Origin: Octopus sinensis
Taxonomy: Eukaryota
Direction: 5' to 3'
DNA: 64,000 nt
Assembly: GCF_006345805.1 (NCBI RefSeq)
Contig: NC_043004.1
Coordinates: 103,912,001 to 103,976,000, forward strand
The notes under the pieces: model-generated
Told to the model about the DNA's origin: nothing
The model's input: the letters and a program-made list of their open reading frames with translations, nothing else
Database searches by the model: none
Position numbers and translations under genes: made by a program
Shown here: piece by piece, positions 25,061 to 46,215 of the stretch
Layout: each line of letters opens with the position of its first letter
Position numbering within the stretch: position 1 is the stretch's first letter

Positions 25061-27205
25061 ATGTAAAAAACCAGACTGGATTAGTTTATGCGCGACTCCA
25101 TTTTCTCCCGAGACAAAAGGACATTTAGAGGAAAAAAGATGGGATGGTCATGGCTGGAACATTTTTTACCATAGATACTCTAGATTACCTGACTTCGTGT
25201 CCTATCCACTTTTTTTTTCTTTAGAATAGTCGGGAGTAGGGAGCAACATTCGGGACCTTCTTTTTGACTGGTGTTTTGTTTTGTCAACCCCCGAAAGGAT
25301 GAAAGGTAAAGATGTGTTCAAAATTCCGCCGAGGACAACTTCGCCTCGCATCGTTTCGGGTTCGATGGAGTAGAGTACCTGTCTTGTACGGGTGGGGGTG
25401 AGGTTGATGCGATCGACTACTAATCCACCCCACCCCCCCACCCCCGGTCTTCTCCCTAAATTTCAGATTTTGTGCTTGTTTGTAGGAGAAAATAACATAC
25501 ATAAATCAAAATCATGACCTTTGGTAGGCCCTCCAAGATCAGGTCAAACAACAACAACAACAACATCAGCAAATTCAGCAGCAGCAGCGGCGGCAAGAAC
25601 AAGAACAAGAACATCAACAACGACGGCTGCACCAGTGTCATCATGATCATCATCAACATCATCATCATCATCATCATTAGCATCGTCGTGATCATCATCA
25701 TCATGACAATCAACATCCATCATCATCATCATCATCGTCATCGTCATCAACAACAACAACAACGAAAACGAAACATGGTTTTGTTGTAGTTGCTGTTGAT
25801 ATTGTTTTTCCCACTCCTCCCTCGCTCACCCTCCTCCCCAGCTGACCTACGATCAAAGACATTCCATTTGTGATCCTCCCGTCTGTGTGTTTTCAGGCTT
25901 ACTGCTTGTTCTCTGGACAGCAAACTTATTCAATAATGATTTTATTTTGTTTTATTTATTGAATGTATCAAAAAGATGATTGGGTGTGGTCTGAGGGTGG
26001 TGGGGCGTGGGTGGAGATTTTGATTGCTATTTCTAACAGGTTCTGGTGACCACGTCGCAGAGAGGAAGGGACTCTATTATTGGCTCTTTGACGATGTTGG
26101 TTAGGTCGACGATGACGACGATGACGACGATGATGATGATGATGATGATGATGATGATGATGATGACGACGATGATGATGACGATGATGATGATGATGAT
26201 GATGATGATGATGATGATGATGATGATGACGACGATGATGATGATGACGATGATGATGATGACGATGACGACGATGATGATGATGACGATGATGATGATG
26301 ATGATGACGATGATGATGATGACGATGATGATGATGATGATGACGACGACGATGATGATGATGACGATGATGATGATGACGATGACGACGATGATGATGA
26401 TGATGATGATGATGATGATGACGATGATGATGATGACGATGATGATGATGATGATGATGACGATGATGATGATGATGATGACGACGACGATGATGATGAT
26501 GACGATGATGATGATGACGATGACGACGATGATGATGATGACGATGATGATGATGATGATGGTGGTGATGATGAAGATAATGATAACGATGGTATGATGG
26601 TGCTGACGATGATGACGACGATCGCCCTCACTACCACCATCACCACCACCACCATCACCACTACACCGACGAGAACCACGACCAAAGACAACGCTGCCGT
26701 CGATTGATGATGTTACTGATAATGATGACGATGAAGATGGTGATGGTGAACATGATGGTGATGATGATGATGATGACGACGACGACGACGACGTCCGCCG
26801 TCACAACCACCACCACCACCACGAATATGACAACGACGACCACGTCGATCACTTACCAACGACATCGACGACGATGATGATGATGATGATGACGACGGAA
26901 AGGACGACGAACACGACGGTCCCACCCACCCAGCCACCTCACTCTCCCTCCGCTCCTCGAGTACAACCAACGATGATGATGACGATGATGATGATTAAGA
27001 TGAGCTTGAAAAATTATGATGAGCCTGGCGATTATTCTGATGAGGATGATGAAGATGGTATCGATGATAATTATGATTTCGTAATAATAGTACGGCCGAC
27101 CGGAAGAAAGAGAGGGAGAAGGAGAGAGAGAGAGAGAGAGACAGAGACAGACAGAGAGACAGACAGACAAAGAAAGGGGTGAAGTTCTCCTCTGCTTTTC
27201 CCTGG

Positions 27206-27325
27206 TCTCTCCAGCTCCCTTATATTTCATTTCCCGTCGTAATGTCCCAGCAGAATCAGTTTTGTTGCAGGACTGCTGCAATCCCAACTGGCGCGAGTTC
27301 TGTGTGCGCATGTGCGCTCACGTAT
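27206..27325. promoter_or_regulatory. 120-bp block identical to 46096-46215; putative conserved regulatory element, copy 1
   Basis: Line-by-line comparison gives 120/120 identity. Contains a minus-strand aaatataaggg (TATA-like) and tgcgcatgtgcgc (NRF1-like). The duplication is certain; the function is inferred. Confidence 0.45.
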
Positions 27326-28643
27326 TTGTATGTGTGTGTGTGTGTGGTGTGTGTGTGTGTGTGTGTGTGTGTGTGTGTGTGTATGGTGTGTGTGTGTGTG
27401 TGTGTGCGTGCGTGTGTGTGTGTGTGTGTGTGTATCTATCTATTATCTAAGGCACTAAAAGAGAATGACTCTCCCCCCCCAGACACGACAGTACATATAT
27501 ATATATATATATATATATATAAACAACATACACATATATATATATACTTATACAAACATATATGTGTGTGTATGTGTATGTAAGGAATCGGACATTAAAC
27601 ATGGAAGCGACCAACCAACCCACCAACCAGCCATCATCATCATCATCAGTAGCAGCAGCACCGCCACCACCACAATCACCGTCGCCGCCGCCACCATTCC
27701 ATACCATCATCAACACAAACAGAATCACACCCTACCACTCCACCCCCAGACCGCCGCTACTGCTCCTACTACTACTACTACCACAACTACTAACACCACC
27801 ACCATTAACACTACAACCACAACCTCCACAACTAGCACCACTATTACCATCACTACCACTACTACTTCAAACACTACTACTACTACCACAACTACCTCAA
27901 CCACTACCACCATCACTTCTACTACTACTACTACCCATGCACCACACCACTTTCATCACCACCTCCACCATCATCACCACCACCAAAATCACTATCACCA
28001 CCACCACCACCACCACCAAAATCCCAATGTATCACCATCACCACCATCACCATGCCACCACCACCACCACCTCCGCCAACCCCTCCACTACCATGCCGCC
28101 ACCACACCACCACCACCTCCGCCAACCCCTCCACTACCATGCCGCCACCACCACCATCTCGGCCATCCCAACCATTGTGGGTTCTTGCTGCATTCCTCAT
28201 TACTTACTGCAGATATCCCTTGTAATACAGAGACGGTTCCACAGCCTCCTTTACAGACAACGGCAATAAGGGAGCCCCTATTTGGCATCTCGACATACTA
28301 GAAATAGCAGTCGAATTTCTCTCATATTACAATAAAGTAAAGAAGAAACTTTTTTTCATAAAAAGGAACTTAAGTAAATGTCTAATGATAACTAGGGACG
28401 CCTTTGGCAAAATATTTAGGGAAGGCGGACGTGGGACCAGATAACGACAAGATATACATAGATACAGGCGCATAACAAAAAAATCTATGCTCCCACACAT
28501 ATTTACAATCAGATGCACATATTCAAACACACACACACACACACACACACACACACACACACACACACACACACACACACACATCTTGTACATACGCTCA
28601 GATATATCCATACGCATACATACATATGCATATTTTTACCTAC

Positions 28644-28862
28644 AAGGCGGCGAGCTGGCAGAAACGTTAGCACGCCGGGCGAAATGCGTAACCGTATTCC
28701 GTCTCCCGCTACATTCTGAGTTCAAATTCCTCCGAGGTCAACTTTGCCTTTCATCCTTTCGGGGGCGATAATTTAAGTACCAGTTGCGTACTGGGGTCGA
28801 TCTAATCGACTGGCTCCCTCCGCAAAAATTTCGGGCCTTGTGCCTAGAGTAGAAAAGAATAT
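28644..28862 (+). mobile_element. SINE family A2, full length
   Basis: aaggcggcgagctggcagaaacg...gtgcctagagtagaaaagaatatt. Confidence 0.9.
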
Positions 28863-43970: not shown

Positions 43971-44521
43971 TATACACACACACACACACACACACACACA
44001 TACTCATGGTGGTTGTCTACTCCTTATACAGAGTTTGACCTCTCCTCCTGTACTTACACCGTATATCTATCAAGGCGTCTGATATGACTTTTTAAACCGA
44101 TGTTTTGAAAAGACACCCGCATAAATTGCATGACTGCTTTGGACCACTAAGAGGGACAGTTAAGTTCTAATGTTGGTGGAGATTAAAATGTTCTTTGAGG
44201 CCTCCGTTAGATCAAATGCCAAGGCTCAACCGGTGCTTATTTTATTGACCCCCAAAAGGATGAAGGGCAACGTCGATCTCGGTGGCATTTGAACTCAGAA
44301 CGTAAAGACGGACGAAATGCCGCTAAAGATTTTTTCCCGGCATGCTAACGACACTGCCACCTCGCCGCCATATACAATTGGTTTTGAATTTTGGCCCAAG
44401 GCCAGAAATTTGTGGGGAGGGGTTAGTCGGTTACATCGACCCTTGTGTTCATCTGGTACTTATTCTATCAATCCAGAAGGGATGAAAAGACAAGTCGACA
44501 TATACACTTACATAGTTCATA

Positions 44522-45367
44522 CGAAGTCTGATCAATAAGTATCTGGACTGTTGCCGTAGTAACGAAGCTAAGGTACGTAGAGTAAAGCCGCTTGGCACAG
44601 ATTGATTTTGAACGCTGCTGTGCATGCGCACTAATTTTTAACGTTCCAGCTCATTTCCGCTGTTTACAGCAGTGCTTGGAGGGAAGGTGGGTAGCGTCTG
44701 GTCGTTGCATTGGCCATGACAGAGAAAGTTGTCATGGCGATACTCGCTCAGAGGCCTACACAACGTTGAAGAAGTGTATGGAGAGGGGAGTGTATGAGCC
44801 GCACACAAGTGTACGAGTGGTTCATGCGTTTCCAAGATGGCCGAAGAATGTTGATATTGACGAACGTTCTGGGATACCCGCAACTAGCAGAACTGAGAAA
44901 AACAATCGAGGGTAAATCGTCGAATCACCATCCGTAAGTTATCTATCAGAGGATGTGCAGATTAGTTACGGTTTCAGTTTAGTTAATTATCGTTGAAGAT
45001 TTGGGTATGAGACTCGTTTCTGCCAAGTTTATGCGAAAACTGCTTTCAGCTGACCAAAGAGACACTAGGGTTTCAATTGCACAAAATCTCCTAGATTGTG
45101 TTGAGAACGATGAAAACTTTTTGAAAACTTTACGTAGGCCTTTGAGCAGTTATCGCCAGGCTTTTGGCAAAATTTGATGCAGATTCTCAGCTCAACTTTC
45201 TGTCATGGTCAATGTGAGGATCACACGCTACACACCTTCCTTCCAAGAGGGCTGGAACGTTAAAACTTAGTGCGCATGCGCAACAAAATTGAAGGCAAAT
45301 TTGAGCCAAGCGGCTTCACTCTTGCTGCTTTAACTTTGTTACTATGATACTTATTGATCAGACCACG
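44522..45367 (+). mobile_element. Internally deleted mariner element with long inverted ends and TA TSD
   Basis: ta|cgaagtctgatcaataagtatc...gatacttattgatcagaccacg|ta. From 44716, frameshifted MTEK...VYGE...MSRTQVYEWFMRFQDG...DDERSG-like...EDLGMRLVSAKFMRKLLSADQRDTRV (HTH region and WVPKLL-like motif). The catalytic domain is absent. Confidence 0.88.
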
Positions 45368-46095
45368 TACATACATGACAGGCTTTCAGAGTTCCCGTCT
45401 GCTAAATCCATTCACGAGGCTTCGGTCGGCCCGAGGTTATAGCAGAACACAATTGCCTAAAATGCCATGCAGTGAAACTGATCCCGAAATCTTGAGATTA
45501 CAAAGCGAGTTCCTTAACCACACAGCCACAAATCGTCGTAATCAACTGACTTGGGATATTTCGCCCAGCTTCTTCACGTTCTGAGGTGAAATTCGATAAA
45601 CATCTCAAAGGCTCATCCTTTCAGGAAGAAGAAGAAGAAGAAGAAGAAGAAGAAGGAAGAAGAAGAAGAAGGAAGAAGAAGAAGACAGGGCAAGGGTGAG
45701 GTTGGGGAGTGGGGTGTAGGGATGGGGTTCGGCTGCAAAAATGCAAAAAATTAGCCTCATTAATAAATAATGCATTGTAGTTGATTTCAGTTGATCAAAC
45801 TCTCCCTAAATAAATGTGAGTGGCCTTGAAACCAATAAGAACAAACATTTAGGTTTTCGGTTTTGGTAGTACCATTCCTCGCTCTTATTACTGCTGCTGC
45901 TTTGTTGTTGTTGTTGTTGTTGTTGTTGTTGTTGTTGTTGATGGTGATGATGGGGATGATTTCGTAATAACTGTACGTCCGACCGGAAGAGATAGAGAAA
46001 GAGATAGAGAGAAGAGAGAGAGAGAGAGAGAGAGAGAGAGAGAAAGGGGTGAAGAGCTCCCTTGCTCTCCACGCCCACCCCACTCCCCGCCGGGT

Positions 46096-46215
46096 TCTCT
46101 CCAGCTCCCTTATATTTCATTTCCCGTCGTAATGTCCCAGCAGAATCAGTTTTGTTGCAGGACTGCTGCAATCCCAACTGGCGCGAGTTCTGTGTGCGCA
46201 TGTGCGCTCACGTAT
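46096..46215. promoter_or_regulatory. 120-bp block identical to 27206-27325; putative conserved regulatory element, copy 2
   Basis: See copy 1. Confidence 0.45.

Follow-up and report, generated by a model that had tools for sequence, protein, structure and literature searches.

How do two copies of a 120-bp sequence, lying 18.9 kb apart in direct orientation, come to agree at every position when the paralogous sequence around them has diverged? The question is raised by a 64,000-nucleotide (nt) stretch of the Octopus sinensis genome (contig NC_043004.1 of RefSeq assembly GCF_006345805.1, positions 103,912,001 to 103,976,000 of the forward strand), hereafter the window, in which a preliminary description had noted a perfectly identical block. 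Exact comparison confirms the identity of this block, here called the island, at all 120 positions, and the match extends 0 nt beyond either of its edges (27206-27325 and 46096-46215). Tentatively, and at somewhat less than even probability, we favour the reading that this identity is kept by non-allelic gene conversion between the copies, possibly together with purifying selection. The two copies are:

27206-27325, no strand assigned: identity island copy 1, 120/120 against 46096-46215, with 0-nt extension.
46096-46215, no strand assigned: identity island copy 2, 120/120 against copy 1.

The island observation is real and lies beyond chance. A 65-nt core pattern, searched with at most 3 mismatches, has 2 sites in the window, against 0 expected from shuffles, and neither blastn-short nor nhmmer finds a third copy, even a diverged one, in the 64 kb that the copy count covers. 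Among the repeat pairs of the window, the island pair holds the longest exact run (119-120 nt), the second-longest being 76 nt, from a pair that is 93.6% identical. Despite this longest run, the island pair, which forms one high-scoring segment pair in the self-comparison of the window (27054-27337 against 45940-46227, 79.9% over 304 columns), is the least similar repeat pair there. Beyond the window, the island patterns have 0 exact matches in Joint Genome Institute (JGI) metagenome contigs and 0 in viral contigs, six 15-mers of the island yielded only chance matches in a full-text literature search, and no island copy is present in 20.7 kb of O. sinensis DNA that carries the window's other repeat families, a comparison of very low power. 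A peptide at 22.2 kb, CCDPNW, resembles the CCNPNW of the island and was considered as a possible third copy; the DNA match amounts to just 21 nt and was judged to be chance.

The island is the core of a short compound unit, which on the plus strand consists of (GAT)n, a 35-bp module, a GA-rich microsatellite, a 13-mer, a pyrimidine-rich spacer, the 120-nt core and simple sequence. Besides the core, its parts and flanks are as follows:

27073-27107, plus strand: upstream 35-bp module copy 1, of the TGATTTCGTAATAATAGTACGGCCGACCGGAAGA type, 32/35 against 45956-45990.
45956-45990, plus strand: upstream 35-bp module copy 2, 32/35 against copy 1.
27108-27171, no strand assigned: GA-rich microsatellite copy 1, interrupted, with GACA units, unlike copy 2 in length and composition.
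45991-46041, no strand assigned: GA-rich microsatellite copy 2, unlike copy 1 in length and composition.
27172-27184, plus strand: 13-mer GAAAGGGGTGAAG copy 1, 13/13 against 46042-46054.
46042-46054, plus strand: 13-mer GAAAGGGGTGAAG copy 2, 13/13 against copy 1.
27185-27205, no strand assigned: copy 1 of the diverged, pyrimidine-rich spacer, 21 nt long, which bounds the island on the left and differs from copy 2 by 9 mismatches and a 20-nt indel.
46055-46095, no strand assigned: copy 2 of the diverged spacer, rich in pyrimidines and in C, 41 nt long with the 20-nt extra segment.
27326-27435, no strand assigned: (TG)n array that abuts copy 1 on its 3′ side and bounds the island on the right.
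46216-46440, no strand assigned: TA-rich array with a repeat-family core, which follows copy 2 immediately on the 3′ side and has no relation to the flank of copy 1.
27586-27630, plus strand: marginal downstream homology copy 1, AATCGGACATTAAAC...CCAACCAG, 31/45 against 46502-46545.
46502-46545, plus strand: marginal downstream homology copy 2, 31/45 against 27586-27630.

The (GAT)n-type array measures 1.1 kb in copy 1 and is short in copy 2, where it follows (GTT)n. The 3 mismatches previously counted between the 35-bp modules were found again, as was the variability of the (GA)n tract, whose length differs between the copies, and the 13-mer, identical in both, starts at 27172 and 46042. Between the 13-mer and the island, the spacer differs by 9 mismatches and the 20-nt indel (21 nt versus 41 nt), and within 6 nt left of the island lie this indel and 3 mismatches. 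On the right, the repeat core in the copy 2 flank (GGGAAGCTTTATG...GGTGG) recurs with 1 mismatch at 15451-15491 on the minus strand. The repeat core GGGAAGCTTTATGAAAATA.ACAAAAGACGAAGGCAGGTGG is located at 46366-46440 and, on the minus strand, at 15420-15493, and TA-rich arrays flank both occurrences; the one adjoining the 3′ side of island copy 2 could have been inserted later and so have fixed the right edge of the island there. Upstream, the homology of the unit spans ~150 bp. Of the faint downstream similarity that had been described, there stands a marginal 45-nt match, ~260-290 nt past the island, with a score reached by 2 of 500 shuffles; beyond it, local alignment brings together only low complexity of the CCA type, which is uninformative. 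The flanks, characterized earlier as otherwise diverged and paralogous, are indeed diverged; their extent had been overstated, as they are short and consist mostly of simple sequence.

Core and flank differ sharply in their divergence, with 56 matches and 13 mismatches among the 69 flank columns that align outside microsatellites, versus 0 mismatches in the 120 columns of the island (Fisher p = 9e-7), or 3-4 mismatches in 48 versus 0 in 120 when the flank is strictly limited to the 35-mer and the 13-mer (p ~0.006, our own estimate). Island and flank do differ in rate, by an amount that depends on the flank columns accepted; the low-complexity spacer, which holds much of the flank divergence, may mutate by slippage. 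The earlier proposal that the core is held by selection or gene conversion is borne out in that the core is far more alike than its flanks, and selection, gene conversion or both are therefore needed.

What is looked for as a trace of gene conversion, an abrupt-edged identity block within diverged paralogous sequence and with its edges at heterologies, is found here. The island appears to occupy exactly the stretch that can be aligned between the indel and the microsatellites, as a heterology-limited conversion tract would. The converted tract would cover only the one long block of complex sequence over which the copies still align, halted on the left at the 20-nt indel of the diverged spacer and on the right where the copies pass into unrelated microsatellites, (TG)n in one and a TA-rich array with an inserted repeat core in the other; purifying selection on the core may add to conversion. 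The higher GC content of the island (51% versus 41% in the non-repeat background) is consistent with GC-biased conversion without proving it. A poly-purine (GA)n tract just upstream of the island, a type of sequence associated with recombination hot spots (PMC1543642), fits conversion as well, again without proving it. None of the competing explanations passed its tests (Rfam, tRNA, folding, protein and Pfam were all negative).

Comparable islands are known elsewhere. Short conversion tracts between Alu copies are documented, and the conversion tract of the human G-gamma/A-gamma globin genes reportedly ends, according to Slightom et al. in 1980, at a (TG)n tract in the second intervening sequence (IVS2). 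Like the gamma-globin and Alu conversion islands, the octopus pair is a sharp-edged block of perfect identity in diverged paralogous sequence, with copies in the same orientation no more than tens of kb from each other and with a boundary at simple-sequence DNA. Unlike them, the octopus unit is shorter than 0.6 kb, apparently non-coding and outside any recognisable duplicated gene, and conversion is proposed for it from the sequence pattern.

Several points weigh against gene conversion. Both conversion as the homogenising process and any function of the island are what we infer from the pattern, and strong purifying selection alone could give the same pattern. A homology of 120 bp, or of ~285 bp at 80%, is near the usual lower limit for efficient conversion. 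The edges of the island resemble splice sites, a feature that is seen in 0.1% of random windows in a post hoc test and that a neutral conversion tract does not predict. When the clean complex flank alone is counted (3-4/48), the heterogeneity becomes much weaker (p ~0.006), and it is weaker still if a TA>CT change in the flank is counted as one event. In addition, the copy count is limited to the 64-kb window, and membership of the unit in a dispersed repeat family, discussed below, therefore stays among the explanations.

Purifying selection on a functional element, acting alone and with no conversion, is somewhat unlikely in our judgement, and could concern either twin exons or twin cis-regulatory modules. 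Under the first variant, the copies would contain twin 107-nt plus-strand exons, used alternatively by an unannotated transcript:

27215-27321, plus strand: putative exon-like segment copy 1, 107 nt long, flanked by ...TCTCTCCAG and by GTAT and containing an ATG (27242), offered as a hypothesis only.
46105-46211, plus strand: putative exon-like segment copy 2, with an ATG at 46132 and no protein match, offered as a hypothesis only.

The island begins 9 nt before a pyrimidine tract with a CAG edge (...TCTCTCCAG) and ends 4 nt past a GT, and between these splice-site-like motifs two frames are open on the plus strand, the ATG at 27242 having G at position -3. An open segment with acceptor and donor edges occurs in 0.1% of random 120-nt windows of the sequence, by a test designed post hoc, and a length of 107 nt is not a multiple of 3, as expected under mutually exclusive use. 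Against twin exons, the donor (CAC/GTAT) is a weak one whose GT equally reads as the beginning of the microsatellite, no further exon was found in 20-64 kb, an identical exon pair yields no product diversity, and protein-level selection alone does not predict zero synonymous change. Moreover, the three open frames of the island, searched jointly as one query, have no match at E<=10 among 5.8 billion protein clusters that include O. sinensis and O. bimaculoides, and a coding exon was rejected on this result. On the minus strand, the open reading frames (ORFs) lose their common frame past the island because of the 20-nt indel, and the 131-aa minus-strand ORF of copy 2 has no record in the gene-position index. 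A non-coding exon, or one in an untranslated region (UTR), would be possible. Like mutually exclusive or alternative tandem exons, the two segments have acceptor- and donor-like edges, an equal length of 107 nt that is not a multiple of 3, a shared orientation and diverged 'intron' flanks; unlike such exons, which normally differ in sequence, this being their purpose, the island copies are identical, and the putative segment lacks a protein match.

Under the second variant, the copies would be twin promoters or enhancers, in which constraint would also act on the 35-mer and the 13-mer as separate modules. The modular conservation of the unit (91% in the 35-mer, 100% in the 13-mer and 100% in the core, with unstable simple sequence in between) points in this direction, as does the moderately GC- and CpG-rich composition of the core. 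The existence of conserved non-coding elements of at least 100 bp in cephalopod genomes, with 1187 squid-octopus candidates at >=95% (PMC9023564), speaks for it as well. The island resembles these elements (PMC9023564), and duplicated ones, in being at least 100 bp long, non-coding, complex and non-repetitive, and far better kept than its surroundings. It differs from the cephalopod elements in that those are defined by conservation between species, whereas here there is a pair within one window, and from known duplicated conserved non-coding elements in that the latter usually accompany paralogous genes and are not 100% identical.

The retention of all CpGs in a CpG-rich block had been put forward as evidence, and turned out to be uninformative because the background observed/expected (o/e) ratio is already 0.86; the island reaches 0.92, compared with 0.86 in the window and 0.86 in the background outside tandem repeats, so that it lacks the o/e well above a depleted background that marks a CpG island. 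At least 7 CpGs are present in 16% of non-repeat 120-nt windows.

The island may still hold a promoter, but inspection of candidate motifs lent this idea no support. The NRF1-like string TGTGCGCATGTGCGCT at 27303 is a direct repeat, TGTGCGC-A-TGTGCGC. The NRF1 consensus is the palindrome GCGCATGCGC, with half-sites 2 nt apart, whereas the GCGC half-sites of the island are 4 nt apart (GCGC-ATGT-GCGC), a spacing that counts against a regulatory module of this kind. For the minus-strand TATA-like sequence AAATATAAG, the predicted start, ~30 nt on, falls in the diverged spacer (27185-27205 and 46055-46095) with its 20-nt indel, where inspection revealed no shared initiator. On the plus strand, the TATA-like sequence TTATATTT lies 37 nt from an initiator-like TCAGTT, too far for a canonical pair, and no motif resembling a downstream promoter element (DPE) was seen after the TCAGTT. 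By inspection, then, neither strand has a conserved initiator downstream of its TATA-like box, which also tells against the regulatory variant. If the core is functional, our first guess would be a 107-nt exon of an unannotated plus-strand transcript, probably non-coding or in a UTR, and our second a cis-regulatory module.

A further proposal, which we regard as quite improbable, is that the island is an ultra-constrained octopus element present as a local pair, either twin alternative exons of a so far unannotated transcript or a pair of redundant enhancers or insulators kept base-perfect. In its twin-exon form, every base would be constrained beyond coding, for example by the double-stranded RNA structures required by cephalopod adenosine-to-inosine (A-to-I) editing.

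The extent of the duplication bears on how the pair arose. It had been described as an old tandem duplication; the duplicated unit is just ~0.3-0.6 kb long. Word-7 BLAST detected no collinear paralogy beyond the unit at offsets of 15-23 kb, except for short low-complexity matches (E >= 5e-4). The unique intervening DNA, at 29.5-34 kb and at 37-38 kb, is not paralogous to anything ~18.9 kb away on either side, and the pair is therefore not an 18.9-kb tandem duplication. Three origins are possible, namely a small ancient local duplication whose copies were later pushed apart, a templated repair event and a dispersed repeat.

The last of these origins corresponds to a view that we consider unlikely, in which the genome harbours many more copies of the unit, as members of an interspersed repeat family such as retroposons with simple-repeat 3′ tails or elements associated with microsatellites; the two copies seen here would then be neighbours by chance and the island would reflect a conserved core of the family. 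A short unit shared without flanking paralogy is the typical look of mobile or dispersed repeats, the simple-repeat 'tail' after the core differs between the copies, and 45% of the window is tandem or interspersed repeat; if the window is typical, 2 copies per 64 kb would correspond, by our own estimate, to tens of thousands in the genome. Mismatches are, however, spread unevenly along the unit (0/120 versus 13/69), whereas such a family would diverge roughly uniformly, and a family young enough for 120/120 should have a near-identical 35-mer and spacer too. Inspection of the island edges disclosed no terminal inverted repeats or target-site duplications, and the absence of a third copy from the window, and of any copy from the 20.7 kb of O. 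sinensis DNA (with the very low power already mentioned), also argues against a family. In comparison with short interspersed nuclear element (SINE)-like or microsatellite-associated repeats, the unit is similarly short, devoid of flanking paralogy and accompanied by microsatellites inside and 3′; it is unlike SINE-like repeats in having two copies in the window, non-uniform divergence and no tRNA-like head, inverted repeats or target-site duplications that could be seen.

The same surroundings invite a technical explanation, in which two slightly different cores became identical during assembly because misplaced reads were used to polish the consensus. The core does sit in microsatellites, where read placement is hard. 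Nevertheless, a core of 120 nt is shorter than usual short reads, so that reads across it would carry distinguishing flank, the flanks remain clearly different, and the copies are separated by 18.9 kb of ordinary sequence that is not duplicated; we consider such an artefact very improbable.

A duplicated small RNA gene, whether for a microRNA (miRNA), a small nucleolar RNA (snoRNA), a small nuclear RNA (snRNA) or another structured RNA, had also been suggested and is, of all the proposals, the one to which we give almost no credence. Rfam yields 0 matches in the window at the gathering threshold. Among the matches listed at E<=10 over 26900-27600, none lies within the island; a few extend out of the GA-rich flank into the first 20-30 nt of the island, and all others fall in flanking simple sequence. 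ARAGORN detects 0 tRNAs, and inspection showed no C/D or H/ACA boxes. Folding is no better than that of shuffled sequence, both for the 120-nt island (z -0.45 on the plus strand and -0.80 on the minus strand) and for the 76-nt context of the hairpin (z -0.39 and -0.13). The hairpin that had drawn attention to a small RNA does exist, as a possible 12-bp imperfect stem at 27243-27272, and has little stability (-7.2 kcal/mol, z -1.7). Transcription by RNA polymerase III (Pol III) is disfavoured by a T4 run inside the island, which would terminate it on the plus strand, and by the lack, on either strand, of a T-run common to both copies after the island. With Rfam, ARAGORN and the folding of four sub-windows on both strands all negative, the small RNA was rejected.

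The surrounding DNA is rich in repeats, with 16.3 kb of tandem and 18.0 kb of intra-window repeats, together 45% of the window. Pfam recognizes 0 families in ~12,000 aa of ORFs outside repeats, and 4787 aa of unique ORFs from 20-64 kb have no match in the protein collection at E<=1e-4; as no coding exon was found, the island pair lies in intergenic or deep intronic DNA. Copy 1 is embedded in a ~7-kb domain (21200-28300) of long degenerate trinucleotide arrays, comprising (ATC/GTC)n, (ACC/ACT)n, a 1.1-kb (GAT/GAC)n array at 25985-27070 and CCA/ACC tracts at 27640-28200; long ORFs in this domain are low-complexity read-through only, and similar arrays are located near both ends of the window (1000-1700 and 57200-58000). 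About 0.6 kb upstream of copy 2, a mariner-like remnant (44518-45369, with peptides of the 'ERSG.P.TSRTE' type), missed by Pfam, is 73.6% identical over 794 nt to positions 6910-7675 of the O. sinensis locus around LOC118762190 (L001, GCA_006345805.1). This locus shares the SINE, mariner-like and long interspersed nuclear element (LINE) families of the window at 72-86% nucleotide identity. At the edge of the window, and running off it, 1-804 on the minus strand is a C-terminal remnant of a jockey-like LINE reverse transcriptase, whose protein is 64% identical to LOC118762190 of O. sinensis and also matches a jockey-like protein of O. bimaculoides, and which has 77% nucleotide identity to 10123-10702 of L001. 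This remnant and the shared repeat families mark the host as an Octopus-type genome.

Other repeats include a tandem array of about four 184-bp SINE-like units at 18332-19052, mutually 92% identical, with dispersed relatives at 8.4, 9.3, 14.2, 28.6, 41.5 and 63.6 kb, and a ~250-bp direct duplicate (13083-13334 and 13555-13809, 96% identical, 470 bp apart), more alike than any other repeat pair in the window, though its longest exact run is just 65 nt. Two inverted-repeat pairs with short spacers, at 43475-43631 and 43765-43921 (90%) and at 60919-61142 and 61297-61519 (82%), could be the ends of foldback elements or of elements resembling miniature inverted-repeat transposable elements (MITEs). 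The stretches at 29500-34000 and 52300-54000 are nearly free of tandem and intra-window repeats and have no protein, Pfam or in-window paralogue match.

The island is a statistically unusual block of identity in a short, locally duplicated non-coding unit, and a new instance of a known pattern, that of concerted evolution or constraint. Its meaning hinges on genome-wide copy number and conservation across species, and as the evidence stands it is a modest curiosity. If it is one of many dispersed copies, it would be an ordinary repeat core of no special interest. If it is low-copy and conserved across octopods, it would represent concerted evolution on a very short unit. It would then also be a candidate for a functional non-coding element, whether exon or regulatory module, and few of these have been characterized in this lineage.

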